A DNA stretch of 63,648 nucleotides from Hemiscyllium ocellatum. Lineage: Eukaryota. How positions within the stretch are numbered: position 1 is the first letter of the stretch; each line of letters opens with the position of its first letter. Positions 25,620 through 62,512 of the stretch are shown here, one piece after another. Location of the stretch: the NCBI RefSeq assembly GCF_020745735.1, contig NW_026867509.1, forward strand, positions 1,674,353 to 1,738,000, read 5' to 3'. The notes beneath the pieces are model-generated. The model searched no databases. It saw nothing but the letters and a program-made list of their open reading frames with translations, and was not told where the DNA came from. Both the position numbers and the translations under genes were made by a program.

Positions 25620-26495
25620 TAATTGAATGAATAATGCAATGTGTCTAAATGGACAAAGCGGCATATTCTTGAACTGCTCTCTGAACTTAGCCTGAGTTAT
25701 AACACAAATGCAAGCATTTGTACAGCAACTCAGAATATGGAGCATAAATCCAATTTCCCGTACGGAGTATGGTAACCATATAGCCTCATAACTCAACAAA
25801 ATAAGATACAGCATGAAAGTTGTCCATAACAGGATGAAATTCCCTGAGAAAATAAATAGTAAATCTATACACTTCCTTTGGATCTCAATATCTGGGTCTC
25901 TTGCATTTCCTCGTCATTCTGACGATGCAGTCTCTTCCGGGCTTTTCTGCTTATCAAATATCTGGATTTTTAAATAAACAAACAGGAGAATTGGAAGGCA
26001 AAATGAACAGCAGTGAGTAGAATGTACGAATGAACTCCATTAATACCCAAATAGGAGATTCAAGAATTTCAGTTGTTCTGCCACAAAACCAGGGAGTGTT
26101 CTCCAGCCAGGACTCACCCAAAATATCAGAAATTATCTTTGATGCAACTCAATACAGTAACTGTTCCCAGAACAACAAGCGCTGTCTTCTTGGTGTGGTA
26201 TTTACATTTCAGCTTCTGTCAACAAATAGCCACAAATCTATCAAAAGTTAAAGAGACAGTGAACAAGAGAGAACAATCAGTGACTACGTAAACCAGGATA
26301 GCATGAATAGTGCACACACGGCCAAATTACAGGAAAATCAATTATAATGTGCAAACAATTGGAATATGCCTCAATGTTAGGTCAAGAACTACAACCGGTA
26401 GATTCGCTGCAGCCATCGTTCAAAGGTATTGGGTAATACATTTGGACAGACCGAATTTTCCATGAGATAATATCAAAATTGTCAGTACGGTAACC
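25620..26495 (-). pseudogene. GPR139/GPR142-like class A GPCR pseudogene (main exon)
   Basis: Minus strand reads VTVLTILILSHGKFGLSKCITQYL*TMAAANL..TFDRFVAIC*QKLKCKYHTKKTA..LSCIK, and ORF 25611-25814 has LHILSCCTNACICVITQAKFREQFK; several stops and frameshifts. Confidence 0.85.
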
Positions 26496-28589
26496 GAAAA
26501 GAAAAGAAAACAAACATAAAGTATAAAAAAGCTTGGAAAGAAACTTGCCAGTTTGAGTATTTGTTCAGATTTTTTCTGCATTAATGTGATCAGCAAAGGA
26601 TGAAAATACTTACATGTTGCTCAGCATTTTTCTAGGTAAAATAATTCATCTTTTAACAAAACCAAAGCATATAATCAGCATGATTTGGCACAGAAGTAAC
26701 AGCACTTCAGGTAATCAAGTGGAATGAGTATTCTGCTCACAGCCTGCAGTCCAGCAGAAACAATCAGCAACAAACAAATTGAAATATACTAAAAGAAGTT
26801 GGATGAACTCAGTGAAATCGTTCAGAATACGTAGCGTGGCTATGATCTGACATCAACTCAGTTCAAGCATCTGATCATTATTCATTGATTACCAGATAAT
26901 CACAAAGATTTCTTCCACAATGCGTTACCCTTGGAATATTGTGAATCACCAATCCAAATCCTGCTCCAATTCATTATTCATCATTTCCGGATGAATGAGG
27001 GAAAATAATGTAGCATGATAAGTGTAGATTCCCCTGATAATTTCACAGTGGCTCCTGGTTTATTATGGAATATCGACCCAAGTCCTGCTTCTAATATTGC
27101 CTCATTAAGCATGATATGGAATGCCAAAAGCAAGGAAGATTCTTGCTGCTGAACATTACCCAGTAATACCAGATTAGTTCAGCAAATCAATCAACCTACA
27201 AACCTTCTTTTCATCAATATCCAAAGACTAAAGGTTATTGTCGGACAGTTAGCTAATGTTTGTCCTGCTGAATGTTGCTCAGTGACTGAGGCTTGGTGCC
27301 AGTGAATCAATCTATATTTATGTTCAGAAACATTAGGCTGTGAGAATGAGTTTGTGTGTGCGTGTGTGCACACGTGTGCATGTGTGTGTGTGTTTGTGTG
27401 TATCTGCAGCAAGAGAGAGTGTCCTAAAAAGTGTCCATTAGTGTGGTCCTGTGATGTGGAGAAGGGAGCAGGGATAAACCATGCATGCAATAATTACACG
27501 ACAGAAATCAGTCTGGTCAGGTTTCATCATATTTCATGGACTGATAAACCACGCATTTAGAACATACTCCAATTGCCTGCTCCTGCTATTTGGCAAGGGA
27601 ATGCCTCTTTTGACATTTATTTGTTTGTGGTTTATTTGATTATTTTGAAACGAATCTGTAAAATAAGATTTGCTTGTTACTTTGCAAAATAGAAGTGTGA
27701 ATATCTGAGAATGCTTTATATCAGACTTGATAACTATGTGGTTACATGACTCCAATTATACAGGTTAAATATTGTTCTGTAAGAAGTGGCTGAATTGACA
27801 TTAGTCAAGGTTTACGTCGGTCAAAACATTGATAATTTGGAGAGAAATGTTTCAATCCAGCGTGCGCGGACAGAACCAAATTTGCTTCAGATACATTTTA
27901 CACGCACTCGGCATGTCCAAGGAACAAGAATCCTGCAGGGAAGGAAAGCTTTGCAATTGTTCAAAATCAAACCTAAAAGTAATCGAAGATAGAGCAGAAG
28001 TAAATTATAACTTTGCATCTTTTCAATAAATCATGATACTAATGTTATTGGAAACCAAATCAAGAAGCACCTTTTTTAAAATCACGTCGGTAAATGGCTG
28101 ATAGAGGTGTTCCTTCCCTCAGTGCCATGACAACTGTTTCTACTTTCTTCACCATGCTAAACTGTCTCACTGAAAGACTTTCAAAAAATGTGTCCATGGT
28201 CTACCTGTACAATTACGTTACTCAAACGTGACACAATTATTTTTCTCCAGCTGATTCAGATGTACGATTTGCCAATTAAATTGAAGAATGAAGAGTCCAT
28301 TGATTTCTAGCAAAAAAAAGTAGTTGCTTCTAACAGAAAATTACATCTACACAGGATATGACATAATTACAGGAAATGACGCCACCAAACCAAGAAAACC
28401 TAAACACATAAATAGAAGCGGGACATAACAGCAGTAATTCACCGGAGGCTCACAGATAACATTACCTAGTATGGTAATGGAACATCTGACAATGAATCTT
28501 CCAGCTCAGTGAGCACACTTACATCCAGAATCTTTACCTGAGCTAAAAATCTTCTCAAAGCTTGCCAAATTCTCTGTTACCACAGGGTA

Positions 28590-30649: not shown

Positions 30650-31220
30650 TCTTCACATATTACGAAATGGGTGCTTCTCTGAACATCGCTTCTGCGAGCT
30701 GTAACTGCATCTAACGTCATTTGTTGATATTCTTCTGGACTCAGTTTCAATATCTTTACTCAAAATGGGGGAAAGAAAGCAAATGTAACCATTGGCCAAT
30801 GACTGTCGGAGAGAATTACCAGGAGACGTGTGGAGTTCTACAAGAAGATGACTTTTCATTTGCTAACAAAAGCCGTGACAACCAGAGAGAGAATTCTTAA
30901 TTGCCCCCGAACCTCGGTGTCCATTATTTTACCTTATTTTATCATGTTTTCTTCGAGTTTGTCAGCATATCTAATGTGTTAGTCAGGGATATCATTCTGC
31001 AGTTATGCAACAAACCAATGATTTTAGTTCATGTTACCTCTCTACTCCTTCTACTATGTTTTTTTCCTGCTTCAAACTTAACTCATATCATAACGATTAT
31101 TTATTATTTCGTCTGCCACAATGGTCTCCCAACTCCAATCTTAATATTTCTCTATTATGTTACGGTTAGATATTTGCTGTTACAGCAGCCACAATGGACT
31201 TTAGCCCGAGGTTGAAACAA
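30650..31220 (+). pseudogene. Highly degenerate GPR139-like GPCR remnant
   Basis: ORF 30901 ends LPTPILIFLYYVTVRYLLL, resembling LTPILPFLLILLLNAMTVRYILV of the 61.6-62.5 kb copy; upstream similarity is weak. Confidence 0.4.
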
Positions 31221-33678
31221 TTACATCACGCTCACATTTACTTACATGTCACATGCTTTGTTTGAACTGATTATGCTGCCATTGGTACCTAACCTAATTA
31301 TACTACCTAACTAGCATGTTTCTCCCCCTATTGCTCGATACACGATTGATGTAGTATTCTGACTGATGTAGCATTCCACAAATCCTTGTAACATTCCACC
31401 CAGTCCTCATGTTTAACTCATTAAATGCCCTTATTCACTTTATTTTCCATGTGATCTTCAGTTTTATGATTCCAAGAATTCTAGAATATATTAAAAAGAA
31501 CTTAACGCCAGAATATTTAGTAACAAGTAGCTGGTCATACAGTGTTAGCAGAGCTAAATGAAGTGAAAAACCTGCCTGGCAAATTCGGTGGAATTCCTCT
31601 AGCAGAGAACAAGCAGAATGGCTAAAAAGGCTGGCTCGAAAAAGCATTTGCATTTCCAGATCATGTTTGAGAATGTACCACAAATTAGAATACTTAATGA
31701 AAAAGAAGTCAAAATATCAGAGGCAGATATTAGCATGGAGAGGCGGTGTCTTAATTATTTGTACACAAACACTTGAATAAAGGCAGTGCGTGCCCCGACA
31801 GAAAGCGAATCTGAGCCACAGTGCGACAAACATCAATGCTGGGGCCTCAGTCTTTCAGAACATGTACAGTGATTTGAATAAGGAAAGAGAATTTACTGTC
31901 GCCAAATTGGCGAGATCCAGAAAAATAATTGGAACACAGGTTGTAATGATGACACAACGAGACTGTGGAAGGACATAAATAGAGTGAAAGGGCAAAAGCT
32001 TGGCAGCTGAAATATTACATCTGAAATGACAGCAAAGGTGAATATTATGCAAATTGATGACGATTACAGAAACGTGCAGAGATTTTCGGGGATGGAGGAG
32101 GTGACATTATTGTGGCTACTATTGCATCGGTCTCATAAAGTTGGAATGTTGACACAGTGGGGAACAGTGAAATTAAACGGAACATGGGCCTGCACTTCAG
32201 AAGGAATGGAGATTGAAGTTCATTTTCTGAGCTTTCACTACAAGCAGTTCGCTGACTGTTTGATTCGAGGTTAAGCTGATTTTTTCATGGTTTCAGTTTG
32301 AATTGAGTATGTCTGCCTGCGATTCCACAAATATCCCAACAGATAGCATCACCAGCTGACAATTTTGCACATCACTGGGAATGCATTTGATCATCATCTT
32401 TCTAAAAGAAAAGTGATACAAAATGGCTTCGATAAATGCAGCCGCAAGACAGTTAAACAAGTGAGATTTCTGAAGCTCCATTATGAAGTGAAGTTTCACA
32501 AATTCTTCTTCATTCTCAACACCTGTGGAAGTTTCAATCAATATAAATTCTGCCCAGAATTCTGAGTGTTATCGATGTCAAGATACTATAAAGGACATTT
32601 ATGCAGTCTCGCACACATGTTACCACTGCCACTTTAATCCCAACATCGGTGCAGTGTGCCCAAAACAAGTCAAATGACAAAAAAACTGCATTGTCAAATG
32701 ACTGCTGGATATTGAAACATGATATTCGTAAACCTCGCTGTCGCAATTTACTGAGGTCTCCCAGCACGCAATCAGTTCACTAGCTTGTGTCGCCACTACT
32801 TCAGTGAGAGTGGAAGGCAGAAGCTGGATCTCAGCGAATGCAAACAGCTTGAAAAGGGTTAGTCAGTTCCCATACAGAAGGTATGACGGCTGATACAGAG
32901 AACAAATGGTGAAGATGTCACTCCAACTCCAACTCAAATTGTCTCCCTCTTGTGACAATCGCAGAACACACTGAGAGCAACAAGTGTAAAACGTTTCCTC
33001 CTAAATCAAGAATTAACCACGTAGCATCTAACTACATCCATTGCCTACTCACTCAATATTTCCGCACATGCACGAGGCACAAAGGGAATCAATCACTGAC
33101 TGATTTAAGTGCAACTGGCGTCGCACAGCACATAGCTTTTTCCACAAAGCCAACATATTTGCTCAAGCTCACATCAATTAACAAAGAGTTTGGAAAATAA
33201 AGAGCGTTGCAGTTAAACATTGTAATTTTACATTTGAAGACCGTGAGAAATTTTTAAAAATGCTTGCATGAAATATCAAAAGCTTCATTGAAAATAAAAG
33301 AGAAATACAACCGAAAAATAGAAATTGTTGCAGAAACTGGGATATGTCTCTGATGGCACAATCATGCTTAATGAAAGTATGGTTCTCGTGTTCGGGCCTA
33401 GCCGGATGGATAGAATTTTTAATTAGCAGCCACCAGAATGAGACACACATGATGTACAAAGATCACAGCAAGGTACATGAGGTGAGAAAAGACTATGCAA
33501 ATTTCACTGAAGACATTTGAAGATGTGCAGTCTGATCTTAAAATTCAGCTCTGTTAAAATTCAGAAGCTATTAATCTTGGAACCAATCACAACTGAGCTG
33601 TATATTTTCAACAGTCACATTCCATTCAAGTGAATGATTTAACTTTTCTTCAGAATAGCAGTATCAGATTGCATAACG

Positions 33679-33682
<4 letters not shown>

Positions 33683-33717: not shown

Positions 33718-33720
<3 letters not shown>

Positions 33721-34587: not shown

Positions 34588-35395
34588 ATGAACATTAATC
34601 TCTGTCTGACTCTGGTCATCTCCCTGTTAAGAGGTCTGCTTTACTTATATCTTAAATATCCTTGTACACATTTCCCGTTTCCACTTCCACGTGATTAACT
34701 ATCTTCCCTTCCTCCTAGCTAGCGAGTGATACAGCGGGTGGCATGGTGTCTCAATAATTAGCTCAGTTACCTCAGAACAACAGGGGCCCATGTTCGATTC
34801 TAGCCTTGAGTGCTTGTCTGTCTGGCGTATTCACATTCACCCCGCGTCTGCGTAGGGCCCCTCTCGGTGCTCTGGTCTCCTCACACAACTCAGAGATTTG
34901 TATATTAGTTAAATTGACCATACTAATTTGCCCATAATGTTCGTTGATGTATAGGTTAGGTACGTTAGTAAGGGCTAAATGTGGTGAAAGATTCTAGGTG
35001 GGTAACTCTTCGAATGATCATTGTGGACTTGTTGGGCCAGTTTCCACATTGCAGGTATTCTATGATTAGCTGGGCATTAGCTGATTACTTTTAAAGATGA
35101 GTAATATATACTGTGTCCCAGTCAGAATAAGGGGCCAAAACAATAACGAGTGAAAAATCGACGATAGGTCAAAGTTACCCTGTACGGCTGTACAGTATGA
35201 ACTACATGGTTATTGTCTGTATCCATGACAAGTCACTCACTATCTTTTCAGAGCCAGTCGTTATGGATATAACTGAATGGCTCCAAGTTTTGAACATTTC
35301 AGTGGGAATCTCAATCTGGGACTACATACTTTTCAGCTGTTCATGAATATGTTGAGGGCGACAGACAGCGCCCGGTATAACTGTTCACTGAGATC
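34588..35395 (+). pseudogene. TCR V pseudogene lacking its 5' half (leader 34588-34633, residual exon 35252-35395)
   Basis: Leader MNINLCLTLVISLLR G|GT; residual frame FEHFSGNLNLGLHTFQLFMNMLRATDSARYNCSLR (FR3-like); degenerate RSS CTCGGTG (35396-402), 26-nt gap, ACAAAAACT (35429-37). Confidence 0.7.
34735..35068 (+). mobile_element. HE1-like SINE inside the leader intron of the V pseudogene
   Basis: GCGGGTGGCATGGTGTCTCA.. head, GTTCGATTCT B-box, TTTCCACATTGCAGGTATTCTATGATT tail. Confidence 0.8.
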
Positions 35396-37757
35396 CTCGG
35401 TGAATTTGCAATGATTCCCAAGTCTCACACAAAAACTGAATGTTTGTCACAATAAAAGGTAAGTTCAAGGAAATGCAAGTGATTGAATCCGTAAGGAACT
35501 GTGCAGGGAATCATAAATGCATCTGACAAGAGAGCAAACTCTCGTCCATTCAACCCCTCCATGCTGCTCAGTTATTCAGTAAAATCAGGATTGATCTGAT
35601 CCCCCATATTCCCACATAATCCGTAAGATTCCTTGTCCTTCTTTATCAAGAATGATGCGATCCAAACATTAAAAATATTCATAAACGTTATTCCCCTTAA
35701 TGAATGCAATGTTTAGGTGTTAGCTGGGGTTCACCTCGGTCAGCAACTTACTGTCAAAAGTGATATAATTAAAAACGCAGCCTCAAGCGGTTTGAATTGT
35801 TAAGTTTTTTGAGTAAAATTGTGATGGGTGAAATCAGTATTTTAATCAGAGAAAAAGGACGCCAATGGGACAATGCACCAGCTTGTCCAGAGTTCCAATC
35901 TCACAAGGGCAGCTGTTGGAATTTTAATGGAAATCACAATTCTAGACTGGAAAAGAAAGTCCAAGAATGGTGACCATGATAACCATTACTGATTGTTGTA
36001 AAATACAAGAATGTTCAAATTCTGACTTATGGGAAAGGGAGATACCTCGTTATCTGGAATGGCACGCATGTTACACCAATCACATGTGCGTGACACGAAA
36101 CTGCCTTCTGAAATGGTGAACTTAGCAACATAGTTCAGTAGAATTTAGGATTAGGGATGCCCATCAAGTGTTTGTATTTGCAGTAGCACGCATAGTCCAC
36201 AAAAGCGTAAAAAGTAATAATTGCTATTTGGAAATGTGCAGCAACCTATAATAAGCATGGGATTCCACTGAGTAACAATTGATGGCGTGAATAAATTGGA
36301 TGACATTTCTCCTGAATTGAAAATGAGGCAGATTTTATGGTACTTATCTATTCTTCTGAATTAATAAGAATAATGCATTTGTCGCCTGTTAGAACTGTTG
36401 ATATCGAAGGAAAGAAAGTTTAAGTGAGGAAGACTCAGAAAAGTAAGAAGAAGAAATAAGGAAAGGAGACGCATACAGATAGCAATTGGAAACAGCAGAA
36501 AGTGGTTGGGTAAAGTCAGCTGTGTTTACTCATCAGCGAGTGAACCTTTGATGCACAGTAGTTGCCAGGTCAGAGAGAATAGACAATCAGATTAGAGAAA
36601 CGTGTTTTCTTTCCCGAATTCGAAACTGACTCTGATTCGAATTACATCCTTAACTGAAGACTAGAAGAGTCAAAATATTTGTAAAGGTGAACTGCTAATA
36701 AGGTCAACTCTAATCATGTGTACTCTCCGTGTTTTACTCGGAATGATGACCATGCTGTTCTGTGAACTAAAGCCATCAGTATGTAATTCTCGGTTGAGAT
36801 TCGCAAAAAATATTTTTCAGATATTCTTCATATTCTTCAATGGCCTCCATGCAGTCTCCTAAGAGCCGCTAGAATTAATGACTAAGAAGGGGTGGAACCG
36901 AAAACTGATCTATAATGACATTGGATTTTACAGGTACGAGATGCGATTTGATTAAAAAATTGTAAATTCTTCATGTGTTTTATAGGGTAGAAGAATAAAT
37001 GTTTGGGGGGGGGGAACTCGAGGATCACAAGGCACAACCTCAGAGTAAAGGGACAGCCAGCTTGATCACAGACAACGATAAACGTATTCTCTCAGGCAGA
37101 ATTAAGTCCTGAAAAGGGAAGTAGAGGCCGTGTCGTTCACAGCATAAAAGGCTTAGACAGGCAAAGTTGTAATCACTAAGTAGTTAAGGATTATGCAGAA
37201 AAGATACAAAAATGGAGTTGAGGATTTGCAGACAAACGATAATGTCACTGGAATGGAAGAGCAGAATACATGGGCCTAAGGCTTACTTCTGTTCTATATC
37301 CAATTGTTGTATTGATTTTCACAGCCAATGCTTGCATGTTTTTTCTGCCATTCGGACCTGAAAATAAACAACTATAAATGATGCACTGCTGCACAAACAT
37401 TCGTTTTGATCTTATTGCAGTTTAACTGGTGCCAGTGATCCCTTGGCTGAGAAATCAAGCCTGTCTGTATTTCCACTCCAACATTTCCTTACGTAAATTG
37501 CAGTTCGCTCCTCATTTTTAGTTGTTCACGATGATGACTACATTTCCATATTTTGTTGTTTTGAAAAAATAGAAATGCATATTGATGCAGAAATAAACAA
37601 TTACTTTATCTCAATTAGGAGTACATGATATCATCACGAAAGTGAGATTCACGGCTAACCACCCTCCTGTCAACACCTCAACCCGTACATGTGCTGATAT
37701 GTCATGCAATAGTCTGGCAGTTTGTGTACACGTTCTCTACGATCCTGTAGTTATGTG

Positions 37758-38182
37758 GCTCGTAGTGTGCAGTCATACATGACAAGTCTGTCAGCTGTGC
37801 TGTCTTACCAGTTAGAAGCACAGTTCGATTAGATTAATTGAACTTCAGTGAAAAACGTTTTGTTCTTGAAATTCTTCTGCATTCCCATTCTATGTGTTCC
37901 TCTGTCCCAAAACATCTACTTGAATATTGAAGATACCAGAACAGGTAACGTACATCATTGATTGCATTACAGCAATTACAGAACAATTGATTATCATCTC
38001 CTACATTTACTGAGGTCTCCCCGGGCGCCTGAGAAACAGGGTCTCCTCGGCAATGGTCTAGAAAATCAAAGAAGGGTATTAAGTTAAACATTGACATATA
38101 CTGTAACTTTCTCACCCAGAATCAGTCAGAGAACTGCGAAACTTAGTTTTTGAATTATGCAGAAACGTGTTAAAGACAACAT
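37758..38182 (-). pseudogene. Inverted TCR alpha/delta V pseudogene (candidate leader 38182-38116, V exon 38057-37758)
   Basis: DHCRGDPVSQAPGETSVNVGDDNQLFCNCC..YLFWYLQ..RFSLKFN*SNRTVLLT..TD(frameshift)MYDCTLR; 23-RSS CACATAA (37757-51) + 23 + ACACAAACT (37727-19); the leader contains a TGA. Confidence 0.85.
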
Positions 38183-38784
38183 GCTCTATAACAAACAATT
38201 TAATTTGCTTTAGTGTAGTTTCATTGGCTTCCACGGTGAACCTAGAGGACAAAATATAAAGGAAAAAGCGTAAAAAGTAAAATACACTGAAAAGAGAATG
38301 TAGAAATCTACTGGTCAGAATGGGAAAAATACAAATTGAAGGAGACTAACATTGACTGACAGAGAGGGATAGAGAAAAGCACAAACATAAAGAGAGAGGG
38401 AGGGTGGGGGGAAAGAGAGAGAGAGAGAGAAGTGTAAAGGAATGTGAATACGTTAATTTTTCTAGTGCCTATCAAATCAAATTTGAATTCAACCTGCTGG
38501 CCTCAGACATTCAGCTGATGTATGCTATTTAATTTGAGGACAAGTTCAGGAGGGATCAAACTATTTTCTTCATTTCACTTCAATTTATGGACATTTCTGT
38601 GCTCTGATTCCATGTCATAAATGAAACATCTGTGAGCTGAACTGCCAAATATTTTTCAACGCACCAGTTAAGATAACTACAGCGGTAACGATTATGTTAA
38701 AAATAAGCCCGAACACTTTTGCCTGGAAATGATGATGTATTTGAACAAAAAGTGATTCCACTTGAAATGGTTATTCGTCGAGAA

Positions 38785-39535: not shown

Positions 39536-39570
<35 letters not shown>

Positions 39571-46944: not shown

Positions 46945-46995
46945 GTCACAACAATGGTCAGATATGGAGACTCGCAGAAAACAGATGCATTTAAC

Positions 46996-49640: not shown

Positions 49641-49799
49641 TACAGCTCAACTCTGGCAGAATTCTTGTAAATCTTTCGGCAATGTGTTCAGCTTTAAGAC
49701 AGATGTAACTAATGTAGTCATTAATTGTATGGGCATTAATTCTTCATTGTTGTAATGATCTTTATATCTATTTAGCAATCGAAATGACTTCAATGAACA

Positions 49800-50056
49800 A
49801 AGTATAATGCAAAAGTGGAGAGAATGGCTGCAGTGGAGTTGAACAGGGTGCAATTACAAAAGAATGTTTTCATCATCGCACAGTTAGCACAAAAATTATA
49901 GGCTGCTCAGACTGTTTGTGTTGTGCTATTCTATGACTGACTATGACCGCAAGTTGCTTCTCTTGATTGAATCAACAAGAAGTTACGCCACTATCGTTGT
50001 TGGTGGTCCTGAGTTATCACACAGTGACGTGTACCACTGTACAAATGGTGTACTGA
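49800..50056 (+). pseudogene. Highly degenerate V remnant
   Basis: One frame reads CNYKRMFSSSHS*HK..LLLLIESTRSYATIVVGGPELSHSDVYHC, then CACAAAG with no nonamer; truncated by LINEs on both sides. Confidence 0.45.
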
Positions 50057-50094
50057 CACAAAGACAGAGCACTCCTATAGACTGTGAATTTCTT

Positions 50095-51540
50095 TTAATA
50101 ATTCTTTATTCACATGTGAGACTTGGCGTCACTGGCTGGCCAGTATTGATAGATCGTCCCTATTTGACCTTGAAAAGGTGGTGATGAGCTACCTTCTGAA
50201 ATCGCTGCAGTACACTTGCAGTAGGATAACCTACAATGCTGGTAGGGAGGAAATTCCAAGAGTTTGACCTAACGACTGTGAAGGACCAAGTCCGAGTGAT
50301 AAGTGGCTTGGAGGGGAACTTGCAGTTGATGTTGTTCCCAAGTACCTGCTGCCCTTGTCCATCTACATGGACATGCTTGTGGGTTTTCTAGTTGCTTTCT
50401 TAGAATGCAGGGTGTAGTTCTGCAGTGCATCTTGTAAATGGTACATACTGCTGCAACTGCGCATCAGTGGTGGAGGGATTCAATATTTGTATATGTAGTA
50501 CCAATCAAGTGGGTTGCTTTATCCTGGATGGTGTCAAGCTTGTTGAGTGTTGATACAGCCGCACGCATCCAGGCAAGAGTGGATTTTTCCATCATACTCG
50601 TGACTTGTGCCTTTTAGTTATTGTATCGACCTTGAGGTGTCAGAAGGTGAGTTACTTGTCGCAGTATCCCTAGTTTCTGACCTGCTGTTGCGGCCATTGT
50701 GTTCATGCGGTGAGTCCAATTGAATTTCTGGACAATGGCAACCAAGGATGTTGCCAGTGGGGAGTTCTGTGATGGTAGTACCGTTGAACGTCAAGGGGCG
50801 TGTTTAGAGTGTCTCTAATAGTTGATGATCATTGTCTGCCACTTGTGTGGCGCGAATGTTACTTGCTATTTGTCGATCCAAGCATAGATATTGTGTAGAT
50901 TGTGTTGCATTTGAGCCCGGACTGCTTCAGTGCCTGAAGAGTTGCGAATGATGCTGAACACCATGCGATCATCAGCGACCATTCCCACTTCTGAACTTAT
51001 CACAGATCGTCGATCTGTCGATGAACCAGCTAAAGATTGTTAGGTCTAGGACATTCCCCTGAGGGTCTGCTGCAGAGATGTCCTGGAACTGAGATTTCTG
51101 ACCCTCCACAACCACAACTATCTTCCTTTCTGCCAGGTGTGTCTGTAACCAGTGGCGTCTTTGCCCGCTGATATCAAATGATTCCAGTTTTGTTAGGGCT
51201 CCTTGATGCTCGACTCTGTAAAACGCGGCCTTGATGTCACGGGCTGTCACTTTCCCCTCATGACTGGAATTTAGCTCTTTCATCCATGTTTGAACCAAGG
51301 CTGTAATGAAATCTGGAGCTGAGTGACCCTGGTGAAAGCCAAATTGTTTGACACTGAGAACGCGGTTGCTGAGAAAGTGCTGTTAGATCGCATTGGTGAT
51401 GACCTCTTCCATCACTTTACTGATGATGGAGAGGCGACTGTTTGGATGGTAATTGGCCAGGTTGGATTTATCCTTCTTTGTTGTGTACAGGACATACCTG
51501 TGCAATTTTCGACATTGTCGTGTAGCTGCTGATCAGACAC
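50095..51540 (-). mobile_element. Second LINE family (L2/CR1-like) RT and 3' end, decayed
   Basis: Minus ORF 50972-51298 has VTARDIKAAFYRVEHQGALTKLES..PQGNVL..; 3' end near 50100. Confidence 0.8.
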
Positions 51541-52461
51541 TCCCATGACTGCTCATGACATTCATCAACAGACTACACATCTTCTGTAACGAAAGAGTTA
51601 TTCTGACTGTGCAGAATCTAGTAACACCTGCAGGGTGCCAAGTTCTATGTACATCCCCTATTCTGCAGAAGCAGATTACACTTGATTCGATCACGCAGAG
51701 TCAAGAATATTTCTTTTATGACTCACTTTCGAACTAGCAACCTGTCCTTTTTTCTCAGATGTCAGCAGTGGGAGATGAGGAACTCATTAGTCTTTACACG
51801 ACTTATATATCCAGATCAGGCATTTCCACAGAGGATGGAAAATGCTCATTTACGCCCTGCCACCAGAAGAAATGTCATGTGACTGAGGCTTTCATCGCTG
51901 GCTCTGACTCATTAATTAATCGATACAAAATGTCTTTCACTGTTTACCGCTGTTCAGATGTGAGCTCGATCCCGATTTCTTAATGGTATTTTAACGAAGA
52001 CTGCATTGTCCTGAACCACTCAAATCTATGATTCACCGTTCAGGGGCTCCAAATATGGAGGTACAAGGGCAGCAGTCAATAACCCGCAACGCGTTTGACA
52101 TTGTTCAAGTTACCAGAGTGATTGATTATTACAATCACGTGGCAAGTTATTGCCTCTCAAACGGAATGCTGCAATCCCCTTTTTCGGTGGAGAATTTTGT
52201 TTAACCTAAACTGGTTCATGTATTTTCTACACCACATCATCACTGAAACAGTGAAACACCATGGGACATTTCAAAAGACATAAAATAAATTATTTCGTTC
52301 TCATTCATTGAACTGACAGCACTAGTTCGTTTCAATAAACGGTTAAGGTTTTATGTTAAATGCGATGCATGAGATATCACCGTGAATTCGCCAGCCTCTT
52401 CAGATCCGTTTCTGATCTCACTGCTCCCTTTACGAATCGTCAGGTTTAGTTGCTCTCTGAG

Positions 52462-52500
52462 AGTTTTTGTAAGGACACAACCCAGTTCTGAATCTCTGTG
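52462..52500 (-). other. 23-RSS of the intact inverted V
   Basis: CACAGAG (52500-494) + 23 nt + ACAAAAACT (52470-62). Confidence 0.92.
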
Positions 52501-53387
52501 GGGCTCAGTGCGCAGAAATACATCGCGAAGTCTGTCAGTTCTGCTGTCAACACTTTCAGCTGGATAGTGCGTTTCACATGATCAAACTCCGAGGAAAACC
52601 GGTCTTCTGGATGATTCTCTGTGTTCGTGATATATTGGTTTCTGTTTAGCAGATACTCCATGGAGCCGTTGGAATGCTGACGGTACCAGAACAGATAAAG
52701 ATTGCTACTTGATGTAGCTGTGTAATTACAGAATAACAGGACATCATCCGCCTCGTTCACTGTGACTGCGGCCGGTGATTGTGACACAGAATCTGCACGA
52801 CAAACTCCTGCCATAAAAGAGGAGTGAGAATAAATTTAAAAAGTTACTTCGTTACACTTATAGCATAGAATTAGCCCATTCAACTTGAACAATAAACAGA
52901 GGAATAAGAGAAAGTGAAGATGAACAAGAATCCAATTCGTACAACTAAGCCATTGCGACAGGCAAGGGCTTCAAGAGATGTAATAAAACATCATTGAAGG
53001 CATGGGTCACACCTTTTAAAGAGGTGAATTCCCATTTTCACTCCCGACATAAAAGGTAAAACTAAAATAAGTCGGTGAGTTTAAGAGTCCGGCCTTTGTC
53101 TAGTCACCTCAACCTCAGTCCGGTCTGAAGTCCCAGCTTAACTCTTCCGTGTTAGTTCACGCAGACGCGTTCGCTAATTTCTCCTAAACTGTGCTCAGTG
53201 TTGGTACAAGTTTAGATCCAGATTTTTTCAATATTGGGACAATGTGTTGCTACTTCTGTGATGCTAGAATTTTTAGAGTATTTCTAATTCCCAACAAAGC
53301 GTTGAAGCATAAAGTTCCACAAGTTGTGCACCTACCAGTTAGAAGAGCTGCAGCTGTGAGAAGTAAACGCAGAGCTTTGGGCGACAT
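52501..53387 (-). CDS. Intact TCR alpha/delta V gene in inverted orientation: leader 53387-53336, intron 528 bp, V exon 52807-52501
   Basis: Leader MSPKALRLLLTAAALLT G|GTAGGT; acceptor TTTTATGGCAG; GVCRADSVSQSP..LLFCNY..LFWYRQ..EYLL..RFSSEFD..TDFAMYFCALSP; canonical Cys, Trp and Cys present; no stops. Confidence 0.92.
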
Positions 53388-55399
53388 TTTTTCAGAGATC
53401 ACTATGAAAATGAGCAAAACTGGTCGAAGCTAAAATTGTTTTCGTCAACAGTTGGGACATGATTGAGTGATTTCCGGATTGTTGCTCATTGGTTCATTGT
53501 TGGCAAAGATACCAGATGACAGCCAATGGACTTCAAGTTCGTTTATACTTGAACCAAACACTTTCAATATCCTACGAACCCCACTTCATATCATGACAGT
53601 TGTAAGAAAGGAACAAAATTCTGAAAATGGGTCAGTGGACTTGAAAACTTTGACTTTTTTTTTCCTTCACAGATATTGTCAAACCTGCTGAGTTTCTCCG
53701 GATATTTTCGTTTCTGTCTCGCATTTCTAGCAAGTGCAATTGTCTGCTTTTGGTTTAAATGACAAAGTGAATTTGAACAAGTGACAAAATGATAATGTTT
53801 AAACGATATGTTGTTCTTTAAATTTTATTAATTCTCTCGGCAAAACCAGTGATGGAAAGTTCTTCATGTTGTTCGAGTATCAGAACTGGAGTTTCCCAGT
53901 TAACAGAGTACCTCGCTGACTGCGAGAGTTTTTTCTGGAACTGATGCAAAGGGCCTGTGTGTCTAAGAAAATGGTCAGAAAAACAAATAAAGAAATAAAT
54001 GAACGAACAAGTAAAATTTCAATAAATGTGAAAGTAGAAACGAGTTTTTCTTCGACTGCAAATGCTGGCAAATGCCATTACGAGGCATAGGGACTCACTG
54101 GGTCGCAAGGCTGCTTCCCTGCGCTGGAGATGCATGTTAGATTTCACCCTCCTGCGACCATCTGCGTCGAGCTTGCACATTCTTACGAAGCATTGGGTGT
54201 TCTGATATTCGCCCACAGTTCAGTGATGTGCAGGCTAGGATGAATGACCGTGGGAAACCTGTGTTTACAGAAATAGGATGGATGTTTTCCGGAATGTAGA
54301 TTGCAATCTACATTCAATTAGACTGAATGGCCTGCTTTTAGATTCGCGGGATTCAACGGTATAAAAAATTGTTTTGCTTTACCTTAACCTTGCATCATTG
54401 CAAATGTACATCATGCATTTATATCAGATGCAGTGTGCCAAAATGACTGCCCACCAACAAATTGTTATGCAATATTAGAGATGAATGTCGCCTTTGCGAG
54501 CAGCGCCCATGCAAGGGCAATGGATATTTCAAGGAAAAAATTGCACTGTTGTAAAATCTCCCTCTCTTTAATGGGAATGGTGAGAAAGCAGCGATACATG
54601 TCAACACACCATCCAACCAATGACTGAAGTGAATGTACTACTGACAAGTTTACAGATGATGCAAAATTGAATGAAAAGTCAAGTGGTGAGCGTGACTCCA
54701 AGTGCCTGCAAGCGGACAATGAGAGAGACTACATCAGTGAGTGTGGTTATAACGCCTTCTGGCGGGTTCTCTCGGAAATTTGCACTGCCAGGAAATGAAC
54801 AATTTTTGGATGGGGAAATACCAAATGATAAATTTTCAGGGAAGCATTCTTGAGATGGTTAGATTAAATAACTATTGAACTTCAAAGAAAGGCGACTATA
54901 CGACCTTTATGTTTCATTCAGTTGTAATTTAATCTGATCTTTCCTCACCATTCTCTCATGAAAAAGTATTCATACTGCATTTCCCTGCTTTATCTTTTCT
55001 CCTTCAATGTTTCTGGCTAGAAATTATTATGGTGGATCTCCTCCGTCCACCTATCCAATTGTCTTCACGTCTGACCATCTTTAACTTTTGTAAGTCGATA
55101 TTTTCTGTTGTAATTTCCTCTCATTTCCCTTCGCTCGGATTTTTGGACCCCACAATAACACAGATATTTCAAATCAGCACAGTGGAATACTCAAGACGTC
55201 TATGTAATCTTATATAAGCTTCTTCAGTATCAATCATCCCCTCTGGTGACATCCACAAACTTATTAACCATATCTTTTATATTCTCAACTAAATCATTTA
55301 CATAAAGGACAAACCTAAAGGGATGCAGCAGCAGAAGATTGTGAGTGTTATGAAGCGGAACCTGAACAGAAGCACTATTTCAATGCATCTTCTTCACTT

Positions 55400-55960
55400 G
55401 TCCGTCTTGGTAGCAGATATCGTTCATGTTCGATATATTACTGGTGGACGGTTGTTGAGTAACCACTGTGGATCTTGCGAATGGTGCATACTGCTATCCA
55501 TAGAATGTCACGACGAAAGTTGCAGGAGGAAGATGGGATGCCTGTGAATGAGAATGCTTTGCAATTGATGTCGTTGAGCATCTTAAATGATTTTGAAAGC
55601 CTCGCACTTATCATTGCAGATGCAATGTTTATATCGTTATACAAGTTCAGTTTCAGATCTATGGTAATGCATGAGGTTGTTGACTGTCGGAGATTGAACT
55701 ATGGTAATGACATTAAACCTCTAGATGCAACGTTTAGAATATTTGCTGTTGCAAATGGTCACTGCATGGAACTTGGCTGTTGCGAATGTTACCTTGACTT
55801 ATCAGTAGAAACTTGGGTATTGTCCTGATCTTCCATGTCATCATGAAGCTGAACTGCTTCAATATCTGGGGAGTGGCAAGTGATTCCGAGCCGTGTGAAA
55901 TCATCATCAAATATACCAACTTCTGACATTATGATGGAGGGAAGGCAATTGATTAAGCAG
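55400..55960 (-). mobile_element. Fragment of the same L2/CR1-like LINE family
   Basis: Minus ORF 55789 has TIFTCLINCLPSIIMSEVGIFDDD. Confidence 0.65.
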
Positions 55961-56479
55961 GTGAAGATTGTTGGATGACACAATTTGGCTCTTTCTCTTC
56001 TTATTTTTCACTGCAGAAGCTGGAGTCGTGCACGCTGCACTGTGTCTGATTGCATTATGTCTGAGTGGAATGTTCCACAGAATACTGAATATTATGAAAT
56101 ACTGTCGAAAGTTTAAAGGAAGGATACAGAGTGGAAAGTTTTTTTTATCAAAGAGATCGATTATGAGAAGCATCCTTATTTCGGCAGAGTGGAAAGAGTC
56201 GTCGAGGGAGGGACTTCCAGAGATTAGATCCTCGACAGCTGTAGATTGAAGTGACAGCTATGACCTGCTTCAGGGATGCACAGGAGGACAGAATTGGAGG
56301 TACGTTGTGATAGTAGATGGTTTTAAAATTTCAAATTGATGCAACTTGAAACATTGTTCTACTTACAAATATGAAAGTGAAATCTATCAAAGTGAGGCAT
56401 TGCCAGGCGGGAAGCCAATGTTGGATAATGTGCCTGGGACAAGGGATGAACTGGATACTGCACACTTACCTGGAACACA

Positions 56480-56766: not shown

Positions 56767-56981
56767 GTGTTTGGAAGGACAAGCAGATATGAGCAGAGAG
56801 CAGAAATTGCATTTACACATGACTTATCCAAGAGTTACTCTATATATTTTAAAAGAGACATTGCCAGAAAGTGACTAAGGATGTTTTAAAATGATATCAA
56901 TAACAGTCTGGATGAGACAAAAGCAGTCATTTGAAATTAGAGCAGTATCATCTCGCTCTTTTGACCTCTTCCATCCAACTT

Positions 56982-57770
56982 GATGGCAATCATAATGCTA
57001 TCCCGAGGTCAGTGTAGACACTCGCGATGAATTACCTGCGATCTAATATCGATAGTTATCGCTGATTTCCTTGTTATTATCACTGGATGCATTCTGAATA
57101 GGATCTGTTGCATTTACTATAGATACACTATCATGTCTAATACACTAGTGAGTGTGTGTTTAGCGCAGTGGTGGTTTACATCAGAGGAAATGTATCAGTC
57201 TGGCTGGCAGTAACCTTCAAGATTCGTTGTTTTGTGGTCATCCCCTGCCAGAGCCTGAGCAGCAAAAACTGCACCGAGAAAACTGCGTTGCGCCTCATGG
57301 GAGGGATCTGCTCCTTGTTCTGCATCAAGAACACCCCATTTTACATCCCTTGCTTATGCTGGAAGTGATGCCTTCTCTATATGTCATCAAGACAATCTTC
57401 TACACATCGCTTACTTGGCAGATCTACCGATACCATGACCGTATATATCTTAACTCCCCTTCATTATCGTTCTACGGTTCAACGCCCTTACCGTTAGCGT
57501 CATCATAGAGGCCAACAGGGCAGACAAAAGATTCAGAAGCTCTCAGCATAGTGAAGACCACGAGATGATCAAGCACAATTGTTCCATTGTTCTTCTGTTC
57601 CCAATGTCTCACAGCTTTGTATTCCTGTGGAGCTCTTACGTTAGACGATTCCCCTACATTTAGGTTCGAAGACAGGACTGCCTTGGTAGTCTGGATTTGG
57701 GATGACTGCCGGCATATTATGTTCTTTTCGAACAAAATAGAACGTGTCTTCAACTACAGATCTGCAAATA
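56982..57770 (+). pseudogene. GPR139-like GPCR pseudogene, strongly decayed
   Basis: MAIIMLSRGQC..ADFLVIITGCILNRIC; ORF 57156 has GNVSVWLAVTF..CQSLSSKNCTEKTA..FCIKN. Confidence 0.8.
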
Positions 57771-57779
57771 TAAATTCAC

Positions 57780-58575
57780 ACTATATAAATACAAGCGTGT
57801 GTTCGTGCATGTGTATGAGATCTATCTCATACACATGGGGGGGGGGAGAGAAGGAGAGAGTGTGCGATTGCCTGTGAGAGTGTCGGCGTGCATGCTTGAT
57901 AGTGTGTGGGCGAGTTTGATGGAGTGTTTCCCTGTGAGATGATGCACGTTTAAATGTGCATGTGTAGATGCATGTGCTTGTGTGTGTCTGAGAGACAGCA
58001 TGTACCTGAGAGAGAACATGTTCGTAAGAGAGGGTCTGTGTGATTGTGCGAGTGTGCGTATAAGGGCGTACAGTGTAGTGGCGTCCCTTGGAGTACGACA
58101 TGAACCCAACATCCCGGTTCAGATCGTTCTCATTGATACTGAATTCGGTGATCAGCCTCTGCTGGACTATTCTGTGTTGTTACACATCCACAGTCGGTTT
58201 GGAGGATGGTCACCCGAAGATCCAAAGCAGAATATACTTCACGGGTGAAGTATTCTGCGACTGAGAGGGAGCATCCCTGTTTGGCGATTGCTGCACATTT
58301 ATTTATTGGTTCATTTATTGGTTGTCTTAGCATCCACATGGTCTCGCCATTATACTATCATGAGGGCAACCTAGCCTGCAACATATGAGAGCGACGATGT
58401 TGGCCGAATCACATGAGTAACTGCCGCGTATTTGATGGGTGGTGGCCAACGTTTAATTGTACTATCCAAGTCGACGCTCTGACACGTCTTGCAATGGTGT
58501 GCTTTGCTGTTGTGTTCAATGTCATCCTGGAGGCTGGGCATTTTGTTGCGATCAATGGTTTGCTTATACAAATCT
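57780..58575 (-). mobile_element. Penelope-like GIY-YIG endonuclease 3' end with CA-rich tail (inverted arm)
   Basis: Minus strand reads HHCKTCQSVDLDSTIKR..HQIRGSYSCDSANIVALICCRLGCP..DLRVTILQ..NRDVGFMSY. Confidence 0.8.
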
Positions 58576-58579
58576 GTGA

Positions 58580-59219
58580 TGTCAACCACTGCAACATGTG
58601 TCAGAATGTCACAATGGATACTATCATCACAAGTGCGGACACCACCCACCTGCTGCGCGGCAGATATTCATGCGACTCAGCCAAAATTGTCTACCTCAAA
58701 TGTTGCAAGCTGGGATCCCTGTGGCATCATATATTGGTGAGACCACGCGGGCACTACGAGAATGCGTGAATGGAACCACAAAACCATTTCCAGATGGGGA
58801 GCTCCCTTCCAGGTGTGGAACACTTCGGGGTCAAGGAGGATCTGTCTCCGATCTTCAGGTGACCATGCCTCATGGAGGAGTTTGGGACACGGAAAAATGC
58901 AGAGTTGTTAAGAAGAAGCTGAGAGCCAATTTCGGTATTAATGAGGACATCCTCAAAAGGGATCGTGGTTCATGTCACACAACAGGGTACTCCCCTATAT
59001 TGTACACCCTAACACAGACACTCAAGCACAAGCAAATCAGCATATACATACATTCGGTCACAGGATCACACTCGAACAATCACACAGATCCTCCCTCACA
59101 CACACACTCTCTCAATTACACTCACACACACATTCACACTCAAACGCATGTGCGCATCTTCTCACAGGCATATACTCTGTCACCAACACGCACACACTGC
59201 ATCCAGAACGCGCACGCAT

Positions 59220-59252
<33 letters not shown>

Positions 59253-59810
59253 TTTTCTCCCTCTCCCACACACACATGTTTTCTGTCTCTCTCTCCCTCA
59301 CACCCGTGCACACGCACATGTAAGTCTGCGGATTGAAATTATATTTGCAGATTTGTCTTTGCAAGTTTATTCTATTTTGTTCAAAAATACATAATCTGTA
59401 GGCAATCAGTTCATGTGGTAATTGAAAGTTGCTACTTTGGAAATCAATGTAGTCGGACTTCAGGTTGGGATACACACAGTCACTAACCGCACACATTTAA
59501 TGTCTAAGCAGAGGTGTCACTTTTTTCTAATAAAACCTTAATTTATATTGGGACTGTGACGTGAAAGTAGTTCTGGGATATACATATCAATATTCGAAAC
59601 CTGTATCCTCATTGTTAGTGATTAAAGACTTAACAGCAATCTGATTTTGTTCAAGCCATCGCATCAGTCGTTTGACACCTTGATCTTTTGTTATAAATGC
59701 TGTGTTCTATGATCCTGCCACACTAGCTGACGAAGGAGCAGCTCACCAATGGCTAGTCCTTCTGGATAAACATGTTGGATTGCAACCTGCTGTTGTGCGA
59801 TTTTTTTGAC
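58580..59810 (+). mobile_element. Penelope-like GIY-YIG endonuclease 3' end, CA-rich tail and 3' UTR (forward arm)
   Basis: HCNMCQNVTMDTII..THLLRGRYSCDSAKIVYLKCCKLG..YIGETTRALRE..DLQVT..KRDRG; CA-rich region 59000-59320; terminal CTGACGAAGGAGCAGC at 59727. Confidence 0.8.
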
Positions 59811-61065
59811 ATTACGATATAATTATTCTGACTGGACTCGACTGAAAAGCCTACCTGCGGCTTACATGAATTAAGCTACCACTTAGTTTAATGATATTAA
59901 TGAGTTTCCAAAAACTATGATTCATACAATCATTTTTTGATTGTCACACTCTGCATCACTAATTGTTGAGGCATGCAACTATTAACAGTCGGCCTTTCTT
60001 AAAATAACTCATTCCTTCCTACTGTTTGATTTCTCCTCATTACTTCATCACAGCACCTGAACATCAATCTCGTAAGATCTCATCAGTCTGGCATGTTATC
60101 AAAACTTTCAAAAGTCCGAAAATGCATTGCACACACTGGTTGTCCCTTAGCAGTGCTAAAATTAGCATTCACAAAACGAATTCCAATGGGTTTGCCAAAC
60201 AGTCATTCCCTTTTATAACTTCATATTGAGTCATCTCAATCATATCATATTTCAAAATGTCTACTTATCGTTAACTTCATTATATGACGTGGCTTTTTTC
60301 TTATAACCAACATTCAACATGTCTTTGGTCCCTGTTTTCTTATCCCACTCTTCTTAAATAGTTGGGTTGTTCTCCCTACTTTCTAAACCTCAGGAACCAT
60401 TCCGGAATTTCTCGCATTTCCAAGGATAACCATCAGTGCAATCACTTTTTTCTCCCCACATCATTCAAGACTCTGGAATGGACTCCATTTGGTCGAGGGA
60501 TTTATCAATCTTTATTACAAGAAGTTTTCTGTTCTCATTTGCTAAAAGGTTTTCATGCGCTGGTATCAGATACCATTCTTCTCAAATGTCATCCATCATT
60601 GGTTAACCGAATTTCAAACTGTTGAGCTTTAAATATAGACAAATGTTAAGACAGAATAACAGTAGAATGCAAATCTTTAACTAATTTCACAACTAAAGAG
60701 ACGAAACAATTGGGAAAATCGCAGAGAAGGGCTGTGAGTTCCTTCAGATTGGGCAAAAGACATAAGCTCATGTTTTGAAATCGGGAATCCATTTGATAGA
60801 GCAATTAAAACTCTTGGAAGGGGGCTTTACATTTGCCGGTTGCTATTCTCAGTTTACGTGTATGCAATTGTGCAACATTCCAATGTTACATAGAAAGCAT
60901 GAAATAGTGAGTAATTAGGTTTGTTCGCCAGACTGAAACGAAGGTACATGTTGAAACTTAATTAACACTCTCGAGATCCAGAAGCATTATAAATTAGAGA
61001 CCTGTTGATTGTGTCACAGAGCTCATGTGAGAAGTTTTGTGATTTCCATTAGTTTATAACAAGTG

Positions 61066-62512
61066 ATGCATGGCCCAGCAAGTGGCCCTTTCTATGCCAT
61101 TTACTATCCAGCTCTTGCTGCTATTGGTGTCCCTGGTAAGTTACAGATTCCAAATATATGTTTGTTAGTTGCAAGAAAATCTTTTGTATTTAATGTCAGG
61201 AATGACATTTTTTTCTGATCTTCACTACTGAAGGAATTGAGCGCAGGTCCCTATACATGTGTCAAACATTGAGCTTTCCTCAATTGCAACCTCTGAAGTA
61301 CACAGCAACATTCTATCCAAAATGTAATATTGAACAATTATGGAGCAATTGATTATTACATCAGTGAGTTCGGAATTGTAATATGTAGCATAGCCTGAAT
61401 ATTAATCAGAACAATTGCACAAAATTAAATTCAGTTGTCATGCTGGAAATTACTGGTGTATGGAATAATACGCTATCGTTGCGTTCGATATTCTCATGCA
61501 CATATTACATGATAATCCCGAAGAAAATCATTGCAGGTAGGTCATTATTTTAAAGATTATAAGTATATCTAGTGATTAATCAGGTCAGTTCAATAATACT
61601 TCGCAATTTCCCCCAGCCAACCTGCTGGCGATCGTCATACTATTGCGACGACAGTGTGGACTCTCTGGGTGCACCACGTATTACTTGGTGGGGATAGCAG
61701 TGAGTGATTTTCTTGTGATCATCACTGGGTGCATCCTGAATCGGATCGGTGGCATTTATTTCCGACACAGCACACTGTCCACGACCACTGCCTGCGCAGT
61801 CAGCACCGTGATGATCTATACCAGCCGAGATGGCTCAGTCTGGCTGACCGTGGCATTCACCATCGACCGTTTCGTGGCCATATGCTGCCAGAATATGAAG
61901 ACCAGGTACTGCACTGAGAAAACTGCATCACTGTTCATTGGAGTAGTTTGTGTCCTGAGCTGTATCAAAAATCTGCCTTCCTACTTCGTCTACCAGCCCT
62001 TGTACATTGTGGACGGGAGGTCCTGGTTCTGTGACTTCAGAGACACGTACTATAACTCACCTGCATGAAAATCCTATGACTGGCTGAATCACATCTTGAC
62101 GCCTATTCTCCCGTTCCTTCTTATTCTACTGCTCAATGCCATGACTGTCAGGTACATCTTGGTAGCCAGCAGTGCCCGAAGGAGGCTTCGGGGGTTGGCG
62201 AGCCACGGAGACTCAGAAATGGCCAACCGCAAGAGATCCATCATACTGCTCTTCACTATCTCGCTCAGTTTCCTCCTTCTATGGGTCACCTATGTCGGGC
62301 GCTTCCTCTATGTGCGGGTTACAGGTGAGGCATATTTCAGCGGCTTAGATTTCACTGACCCACAGTTTATTCTCCAAGAAACGACGAACATGCTGCAAAT
62401 ATTAAGTTCCTGCAACAACGTCTTCATTTATGCAATATCCCAGAACAAATTCCGAGATGAACTGAAGAAAGTGATGTTGTCCCCCTTCACATCTCTCGCT
62501 GTGTGCAAATAA
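61066..62512 (+). pseudogene. GPR139/GPR142-like 7TM receptor with two exons (61066-61135, 61617-62512), intact except for one in-frame TGA
   Basis: Exon 1 MHGPASGPFYAIYYPALAAIGVP G|GTAAG; acceptor CCCCAG; ANLLAIVILLR..CGLS..FTIDRFVAICC..TPILPFLL..SSCNNVFIYAISQNKFR; ORFs 61643-62068 and 62096-62512 are in the same frame, separated only by TGA 62066-68; ~321 codons. Confidence 0.92.

Follow-up and report, generated by a model that had tools for sequence, protein, structure and literature searches.

Broken copies of a shark GPCR family among T-cell receptor alpha/delta-type V segments of the epaulette shark

Trypsinogen genes in the TRB locus are a passenger multigene family that has been duplicated with an antigen-receptor locus. 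Unlike the genes described here, they encode proteases, sit at another locus and make up a set that is small and conserved, not a large family under birth-and-death evolution. In human, mouse and sheep, the TRAV genes at the 5' end of the TRA/TRD locus have olfactory receptor genes between them; these include OR10G2 and OR4E2 in human and Olfr1507-1509 in mouse (PMC4574546). An earlier note on the shark DNA analysed here had drawn the analogy with these passengers, and it stands: in both cases genes for apparently non-immune class A GPCRs sit between V segments, from where V-J joining would remove or invert them, and no functional link is known in the mammalian case (PMC4574546). The shark copies, however, belong to another GPCR family (Pfam 7tm_1 was clearly matched, while 7tm_4 stayed below its cut-off). 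They are also far more numerous and spread array-wide, whereas the olfactory receptors sit at the 5' edge of the mammalian locus, and most of them are dead, including all four in the stretch studied.

We analysed 63,648 nucleotides of the Hemiscyllium ocellatum genome (NCBI RefSeq GCF_020745735.1, NW_026867509.1, positions 1,674,353 to 1,738,000 of the forward strand), here called the window. Of the six TCR alpha/delta-type V elements that it contains, three are open, and judged by its sequence the window appears to belong to the V-gene region of the epaulette-shark TCR alpha/delta locus. The open elements are V13, a NAR-type V domain (12899-13063, plus strand; RSS-23 at 13086), V19 (19113-19412, plus strand; YYCALS; Pfam V-set E 3e-14) and V52 (52446-52826, minus strand; Pfam V-set E 8e-12), the last being 63-67% identical to two Chiloscyllium punctatum V genes. 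An RSS-23 lies 3' of each of these three, that of V52 reading CACAGAG-23-ACAAAAACT. The other elements are V35, a weak V remnant that has no open frame (35238-35441, plus strand; tblastn E 0.004), and two pseudogenes. V38 (37732-38121, minus strand) has an in-frame stop, has lost the YxC motif and carries a degenerate RSS; V42 (41792-42161, plus strand) has a frameshift near 41970 plus a stop. The V segments are mutually at most 39% identical, and in their poorly resolved tree every V of the window is on a long branch. J and C segments are absent within the window.

Members of the GPCR family alternate with these V genes and pseudogenes, as the earlier note had described, the V-set elements being found at 12.9, 19.1, 35.3, 37.9, 41.9 and 52.6 kb. 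From low to high coordinates the window holds the GPCR fragment, V13, V19, copy A, V35, V38, V42, copy B, V52, copy C and copy D, and non-Ig genes lie between RSS-bearing V segments. Copies A (25620-26551, minus strand), B (44529-45391, plus strand), C (56968-57786, plus strand) and D (plus strand) were found by tblastn, by a family HMM (E 1e-15 to 1e-121) and by Pfam 7tm_1. The positions and strands that the note had given for its four clear copies were thereby confirmed, but none of the copies is intact: A, B and C carry stops and frameshifts, and D a single stop. A probable fragment covering TM6-TM7 (7040-7180, minus strand) lies outside the range considered in that note; tblastn matched it to the C-terminal half of copy D (E 1.2e-6) and to family protein P0008 (E 9e-6), while the family HMM gave only E 0.005. 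Five family elements in 64 kb form a local cluster, beyond what chance would give. A probable GPCR remnant had also been proposed at 30.7 kb. The family HMM, run in six frames with filters off, returned no match there at E <= 10, and tblastn with 155 family proteins gave sub-threshold matches at 30931-31305 (best E 0.009), so this candidate was rejected as unsupported.

By sequence, the copies are assigned to a rhodopsin-class (class A) GPCR family. The N-terminal half of copy D scores 50.7 bits against Pfam 7tm_1 (cut-off 30.5), and P0187 (XP_060677331.1), an intact H. ocellatum paralog of copy D, scores 81.9 bits over profile positions 2-260. Finer placement is less direct. The nearest public proteins carry the automatic name 'probable GPR139/142', and among solved structures P0187 finds GPR139 first (E 4.7e-10), followed by LPAR6a (2.3e-9), the PrRP receptor (2.9e-9) and MT2 (5.6e-9), with NMU2 also close. 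When the two halves of copy D are searched separately, the top matches are the NMU2 and ghrelin receptors. P0187 and human GPR139 have the TM1 motif YY..L...G.PAN and the TM3 motif TIDR..A.C in common (pairwise HMMER alignment), but the similarity is weak, at 42 bits across the whole receptor and barely above that to LPAR6, PrRP, MT2 and NMU2 receptors. The label 'GPR139/142-like' used in the earlier note agrees with the automatic names and with the top structure. The small margin over the LPAR6, PrRP, melatonin and NMU receptors points to a separate, shark-expanded family rather than to GPR139 or GPR142 themselves, and human GPR139 appears to be only a remote relative. GPR139 and GPR142 are class A GPCRs that are either orphans or receptors for aromatic amino acids. 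The shark proteins form a clade of their own with hundreds of members.

A family profile search gave 752 clusters at E <= 1e-20, and the 120 clusters listed come from sharks, rays and sawsharks only. More than 100 family clusters exist at 50% identity, and the family is present on at least 11 H. ocellatum scaffolds. Together these matches indicate a cartilaginous-fish expansion. The nearest bony-vertebrate matches are the coelacanth 'probable GPR139' proteins P0112 and P0115. Unannotated orphans close to GPR139/GPR142, termed 'GPR210A/B', have been reported from coelacanth, gar and some fishes, in a dataset that had no cartilaginous fishes (PMC6504862). The shark family resembles them in being a non-mammalian orphan group beside GPR139/142, and we note a possible identity of the two purely as a lead. 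Our literature search found no description of the shark family, nor any of GPCR genes at the TCR loci of sharks.

Copies A, B and C are long dead. Copy A is a pseudogene that retains exon 2 only and belongs to an old subfamily of its own; a frameshift-aware alignment gives ~52% identity to family proteins P0053 and P0047, with four to five stops (26422, 26344, 26329 and 26221, and 26128) and five frameshifts. Copy B, a pseudogene of the D-type clade, is 55% identical to P0187 and has six stops and five frameshifts, and copy C, a pseudogene decayed 3' of TM6, has two stops and three to four frameshifts. All three still match the family HMM (E 1e-43 to 1e-15), and a search of the window with an exon-1 HMM detected no exon 1 for any of them. 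An intact reading frame is found in none of the four copies.

Copy D is a complete two-exon gene except for one nonsense codon. Exon 1 (61066-61135) runs from the ATG to a GT donor in phase 1, and exon 2 (61617-62512) is full length from the AG acceptor to the normal stop; a 481-nt GT..AG intron of phase 1 separates them. This two-exon family layout, in which a short exon 1 ends in the G-x-P of TM1 and the intron is in phase 1, was seen in copy D only. Exon 1 matches the exon-1 HMM at E 2.7e-10, exon 2 matches the family HMM at E 1.5e-121, and the spliced product agrees residue for residue with the N-terminus of the RefSeq model XP_060677331.1, to which copy D is 96.6% identical over 320 residues. 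The sole disabling change is TGG to TGA at codon 174 (62066-62068, plus strand), which takes the place of a Trp found without exception in 34 relatives. Four changes are unique to copy D within its clade (G35R, R36Q, S116N and W174*), its branch length in the tree is 0.011, and its close paralog and its bamboo-shark and whale-shark relatives are intact. The nonsense mutation would be a recent one.

It could be argued that copy D in fact works and that the TGA reflects a mistake in sequencing or assembly, or else a null allele that segregates within the population. Segregating null alleles are common in chemoreceptor families, and the preserved ATG, GT..AG splice sites and full-length frame, together with so few unique changes on so short a branch, are what such a gene would show. 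However, three of the four unique changes fall at positions that the wider clade conserves, in keeping with relaxed constraint, the stop strikes the invariant Trp, and the window has neither N runs nor any hint of poor base quality. We consider a working copy D unlikely; were the stop an error or a segregating allele, the V array would hold one working receptor gene. Annotators are best advised to record copy D as a pseudogene, or as a possible null allele.

How the copies came to lie among the V segments was addressed by a tree of 35 rows, built by the careful method. Copy A groups with Stegostoma, Heterodontus and Pristiophorus genes (support 100/100), copies B and D fall in one clade (100/100), and copy C is sister to H. 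ocellatum P0236 (99/93). A single clade of the window copies was rejected by the AU test (p = 0.0003), and the copies thus trace back to three or more old family lineages. The only paralogous block within the window joins copies B and D (44128-46340 versus 61251-63413, plus strand); it is 2.2 kb long, comprises part of the intron, exon 2 and the 3' flank, and contains no V element. Self-blastn aligns it collinearly at 69% over 1333 nt and 69% over 292 nt, and the 69% nucleotide identity of copy B to copy D extends over 44128-45433 versus 61251-62539, a stretch that includes part of the intron. Because copy D has an intron and the similarity of B to D reaches into intron and 3' flank, the copies arose by DNA-level duplication, and an origin as retrocopies is rejected.

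The earlier note had proposed that a V+GPCR unit is being co-duplicated, which would correspond to a defined cassette under current tandem amplification. V38 and V52, both on the minus strand, are indeed mutual best matches in the window (39% at the amino-acid level), and each lies upstream of a plus-strand GPCR of the D clade (B and D, respectively). Yet similarity between the V38 and V52 flanks is limited to 52 nt, compared with 69% over 2.2 kb for the B and D blocks, so that the two pairs differ in age. Self-matches in the window stay at or below 70% identity, with a short inverted repeat as the one exception. With three lineages among the copies, a B-D block that is free of V elements and V segments this diverged, ongoing co-duplication is not seen here; the proposal is largely refuted for this window, and we regard it as very improbable. 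An older joint event is suggested by C. punctatum scaffold BEZZ01003299.1. A block around V52 (46072-55976, minus strand) is collinear with it at 65-74% nucleotide identity (L002 8726-20230), and the 3' two-thirds of copy A with its flank (24482-26262, minus strand) matches L002 20810-22812 at 69.7% over 1765 nt. The bamboo-shark order runs from window position 55976 to 46072 and then directly from 26262 to 24482, so that a V of the V52 type and a GPCR of the A type stand together in this one paralogous block. Disabling lesions common to both, which would date the death of copy A relative to the duplication, were looked for, and none is clearly shared by copy A and its bamboo-shark paralog. 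An old duplication of a block of at least 31 kb (window 24.5-56 kb) may have carried V and GPCR genes together, a reading that draws on a single scaffold and assumes a 20-kb deletion there; the duplication would lie at about 30% nucleotide divergence.

We think it likely that the window holds dead passenger GPCRs scattered among TCR alpha/delta V segments, through birth and death by segmental duplication and with no need of a functional link. Large segmental duplications would copy whatever sits in the array and so produce a birth-and-death mix of V and GPCR genes; since all four copies are broken, they look like passengers that were copied and then decayed with the V array. This is ordinary passenger-gene biology. 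The earlier note had gone further, suggesting that activation of the TCR locus exposes the GPCRs and that their deletion or inversion gives T-cell clones different receptor dosage. V(D)J joining is well established to delete or invert the DNA between the joined segments. As the copies lie between V segments with usable RSS-23 on both strands, rearrangement must by this mechanism delete or invert some of them, and that part of the suggestion follows. Dosage, however, is moot because all four genes are broken; in T cells the loss or inversion of dead genes would have no consequence, and clone-specific dosage of them is meaningless. An intact, closely similar paralog of copy D does exist in the same genome, but the family is also found on at least 11 scaffolds, and the mammalian TRA olfactory receptor genes are likewise lost from one allele with no known effect. 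Functional coupling thus seems extremely unlikely, and a tie of the receptors to TCR rearrangement would be neither needed nor indicated. The intact members placed within the array, XP_060677331-333 with the paralog of copy D among them, might conceivably be expressed as T-lineage chromatin opens at the locus and then be somatically deleted or inverted, an idea to which we give hardly any credence; if it were true, a real functional link would tie a repertoire of GPCRs to the rearrangement of antigen-receptor genes, and clones would differ in their receptor genes.

For annotation, the names 'probable GPR139' given to these proteins are misleading. The family, with its hundreds of shark and ray members, is of more interest than a window in which all copies are dead. 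Sharks are separated from mammals by about 450 million years, and in this distant lineage a second GPCR family, unrelated to the first, would have become trapped among the V genes of a TCR alpha/delta array. The case lends support to the view that the V arrays of antigen-receptor loci act as segmental duplication engines that amplify, and then kill, what they contain.

Three kinds of query were run against the window: both open halves of the copy at 61.6–62.5 kb, public relatives, and a family HMM made from 25 full-length members. Each kind recovered the same four GPCR loci across the whole window, which contains no N runs: A (26551–25620, minus strand), B (44529–45391, plus), C (56968–57786, plus) and D (61066–62512, plus). 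The four copies reported in the earlier note are thus borne out. The remnant it placed at 30.7 kb is unsupported, as the family HMM reports no match there at E ≤ 10 and 155 family proteins gave only sub-threshold matches (30931–31305). A short fifth piece at 7040–7180 (minus) matches TM6–7 (E 1e-6 and 9e-6). Lesions were counted by frameshift-aware alignment of each copy with its nearest intact relative. Copy A has 4–5 stops and five frameshifts, B has six stops and five frameshifts, and C has two stops and 3–4 frameshifts and decays past TM6. Exon 1 is absent from all three; regex scanning and an HMM for exon 1 detected it in D alone, which is a complete two-exon gene with one stop and no frameshift.

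Copy D starts with an ATG at 61066; exon 1 runs up to 61135, with a GT donor at its end, and is followed by a 481 nt intron (AG at the 3′ end) and by exon 2, from 61617 to a normal stop at 62510–62512. The spliced frame of 966 nt equals in length that of the closest protein to D, the RefSeq protein P0187 (XP_060677331.1), an intact H. ocellatum paralog with 96.6% identity. The two are separated by 11 residue differences and one TGA (62066–62068), which removes a Trp invariant in 34 relatives. Only four changes set D apart from the rest of its clade, three of them at conserved positions. D is therefore a very young pseudogene or a null allele or, less likely, carries a base error. P0187, P0281 and P0225 are consecutively numbered H. 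ocellatum family proteins (XP_060677331–333) from one 6.18-Mb scaffold, and the gene of P0187 spans exactly 1447 nt, as does D. It is thus possible that the intact paralog sits on the scaffold of this window, a little outside it.

Each half of D has a Pfam 7tm_1 match, that of the C-terminal half being under the cut-off. Against solved structures, the D halves matched NMU2, GPR139 and ghrelin receptors to a similar degree. P0187 found human GPR139 first (E 4.7e-10), with LPAR6, PrRP, MT2 and NMU2 receptors close behind; its similarity to GPR139 is weak overall and peaks in TM1 and TM3. An exhaustive HMMER search with the N-terminal half of D returned 132 cluster representatives (50% identity) at E ≤ 1e-10, and a word-indexed search with P0001, a bamboo-shark relative, 752 clusters (90% identity) at E ≤ 1e-20. 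The best 120 of these 752 come from sharks, rays and sawsharks only, and most are automatically named ‘probable G-protein coupled receptor 139’. The nearest bony-vertebrate matches are coelacanth proteins. Unnamed orphans from coelacanth and gar (‘GPR210’), positioned next to GPR139/142 in a 2019 survey (PMC6504862), are a lead for naming the shark family. We found no description in the literature of this shark expansion or of its presence in a TCR locus. A CA-rich low-complexity stretch coding for His/Thr (58199–58354, minus; 58604–59400, plus), with a 241-residue ORF lacking a Pfam match, matches the C-terminal extensions of the Chiloscyllium punctatum ‘uncharacterized proteins’ P0021 and P0026. 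Since their N-terminal parts are family GPCRs, these gene models appear to be GPCRs fused with repeat-derived sequence.

Six V-set elements lie among the GPCR copies. V13 is an open NAR-type V (12899–13063, 12.9–13.06 kb) ending ...TATYYCKA, with an RSS-23 at 13086. V19 (19.1–19.4 kb) and V52 (52.4–52.8 kb, minus) are also open and, like V13, are trailed by heptamer-23-nonamer signals. V38 (37.7–38.1 kb, minus) and V42 (41.8–42.2 kb, plus) are dead, and V35 (35.3 kb) is a weak remnant. The signal after V19 is RSS-like (CACTATG-23-ACAAAAACG), with a perfect CACAGTG-23-ACAAAAACC ∼ 55 nt past it at 19475 (both within 19400–19510). A CACGGTG-12-ACAAATATC signal lies at 13482, downstream of the NAR-type V (12899–13110). 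No J or C segment was found in the window. The open V segments occur in both orientations so, given the established V(D)J mechanism, inversion would be needed to join one of them and deletion to join another, wherever the J and C genes lie. Adjoining V38, an inverted repeat of ∼ 200 nt (38237–38430 and 39549–39750; 87.6% identity, arms 1.1 kb apart) is the top self-match of the window by similarity and may represent DNA transposon ends.

The earlier note proposed that a V+GPCR unit is being co-duplicated; trees, AU test, self-comparison and V identities revealed no current or recent unit of this kind within the window. In a careful maximum-likelihood tree the four copies fall into three lineages. 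Copy A groups with Stegostoma, Heterodontus and Pristiophorus genes (100/100), B and D form one clade with P0187, three Chiloscyllium genes and one whale-shark gene (100/100), and C groups with P0236, another H. ocellatum member (99/93). A single clade of A–D is rejected (AU test, p = 0.0003). Self-comparison yields one relevant paralogous block, 44128–46340 versus 61251–63413 (69% identity). In B and D it takes in a portion of the intron, exon 2 and the 3′ flank, and it includes no V sequence. The V segments share at most 39% pairwise identity, their tree is without resolution, and only 52 nt of flanking sequence are common to V38 and V52. The GPCR family is also widely scattered, with H. ocellatum members on at least 11 scaffolds of differing length among the matches listed, and GPCRs and V segments show no concordance in the window. 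These two results go part of the way towards the refutation set out in the earlier note.

Older copying is suggested by bamboo-shark DNA. Among public sequences, the two nearest to V52 both stem from an older C. punctatum assembly, and its DNA was used for comparison. One locus (L002, BEZZ01003299.1) is collinear with window 55976→46072, from the V52 block as far as the element just 3′ of B, in eleven pieces of 65–74% identity. Immediately beyond, it carries the 3′ two-thirds of an A-type GPCR together with flanking sequence (window 26262→24482, 70%). Copy A is unbroken in the window, whereas its L002 counterpart breaks off at residue 138. The simplest reading is that an ancestral stretch of 31 kb or more, with the layout of window 24.5–56 kb, was duplicated long ago and that the L002 paralog afterwards lost ∼ 20 kb. 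As 70% is far below the ∼ 98% protein identity between D exon 2 and its Chiloscyllium counterpart, the relation is one of paralogy and not of orthology. Comparison of A with the L002 copy revealed no shared disabling lesions. On a second scaffold (L003, BEZZ01001236.1), the intact family gene P0001 is followed, 4.5 kb downstream, by a marginal dead V-domain remnant (16689–16878; …VTLSCSY…LFLY.QRP…, E 0.01) that a retroelement cuts short. In the newer assembly P0001 is on an 80.7 Mb chromosome and D-type genes are on a different one (76.2 Mb). The L002 collinearity and the L003 remnant suggest that large blocks with both gene types were copied in old and non-specific events.

The composition of the window and its reverse-transcriptase fragments are of vertebrate-genome type. 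LINE-type RVT_1 (Pfam) fragments lie at 483–854 and 9789–10316 (E 3e-17 and 4e-7), and similar pieces at 28.6–29.4 kb and in L003. A dispersed repeat of ∼ 400 nt occurs at 15738–16163 and 49314–49630, and in L002 (11987–12405) and L003 (12665–13022) at 65–71% identity; both Chiloscyllium loci carry family members or V segments.

The GPCRs are most likely passengers of a V array evolving by segmental duplication and birth-and-death. The analogy with passenger families drawn in the earlier note holds, its V+GPCR unit under present co-duplication is not supported within the window, and its observations are confirmed in part. Olfactory receptor genes located between TRAV1 and TRAV2 in human, mouse and sheep offer the nearest parallel (PMC4574546). 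In T cells, V19 or V52 rearrangement would delete or invert part of the GPCR sequences; the suggested clone-specific GPCR dosage falls away because all four copies are broken, leaving no dosage to change. What is added for this window is a lesion inventory, a near-intact D with an intact 96.6% paralog, three lineages and cross-species evidence for blocks. Passenger genes embedded in antigen-receptor loci are a known kind of arrangement, of which the GPCRs here are a new and, with every copy dead, the least functional instance.
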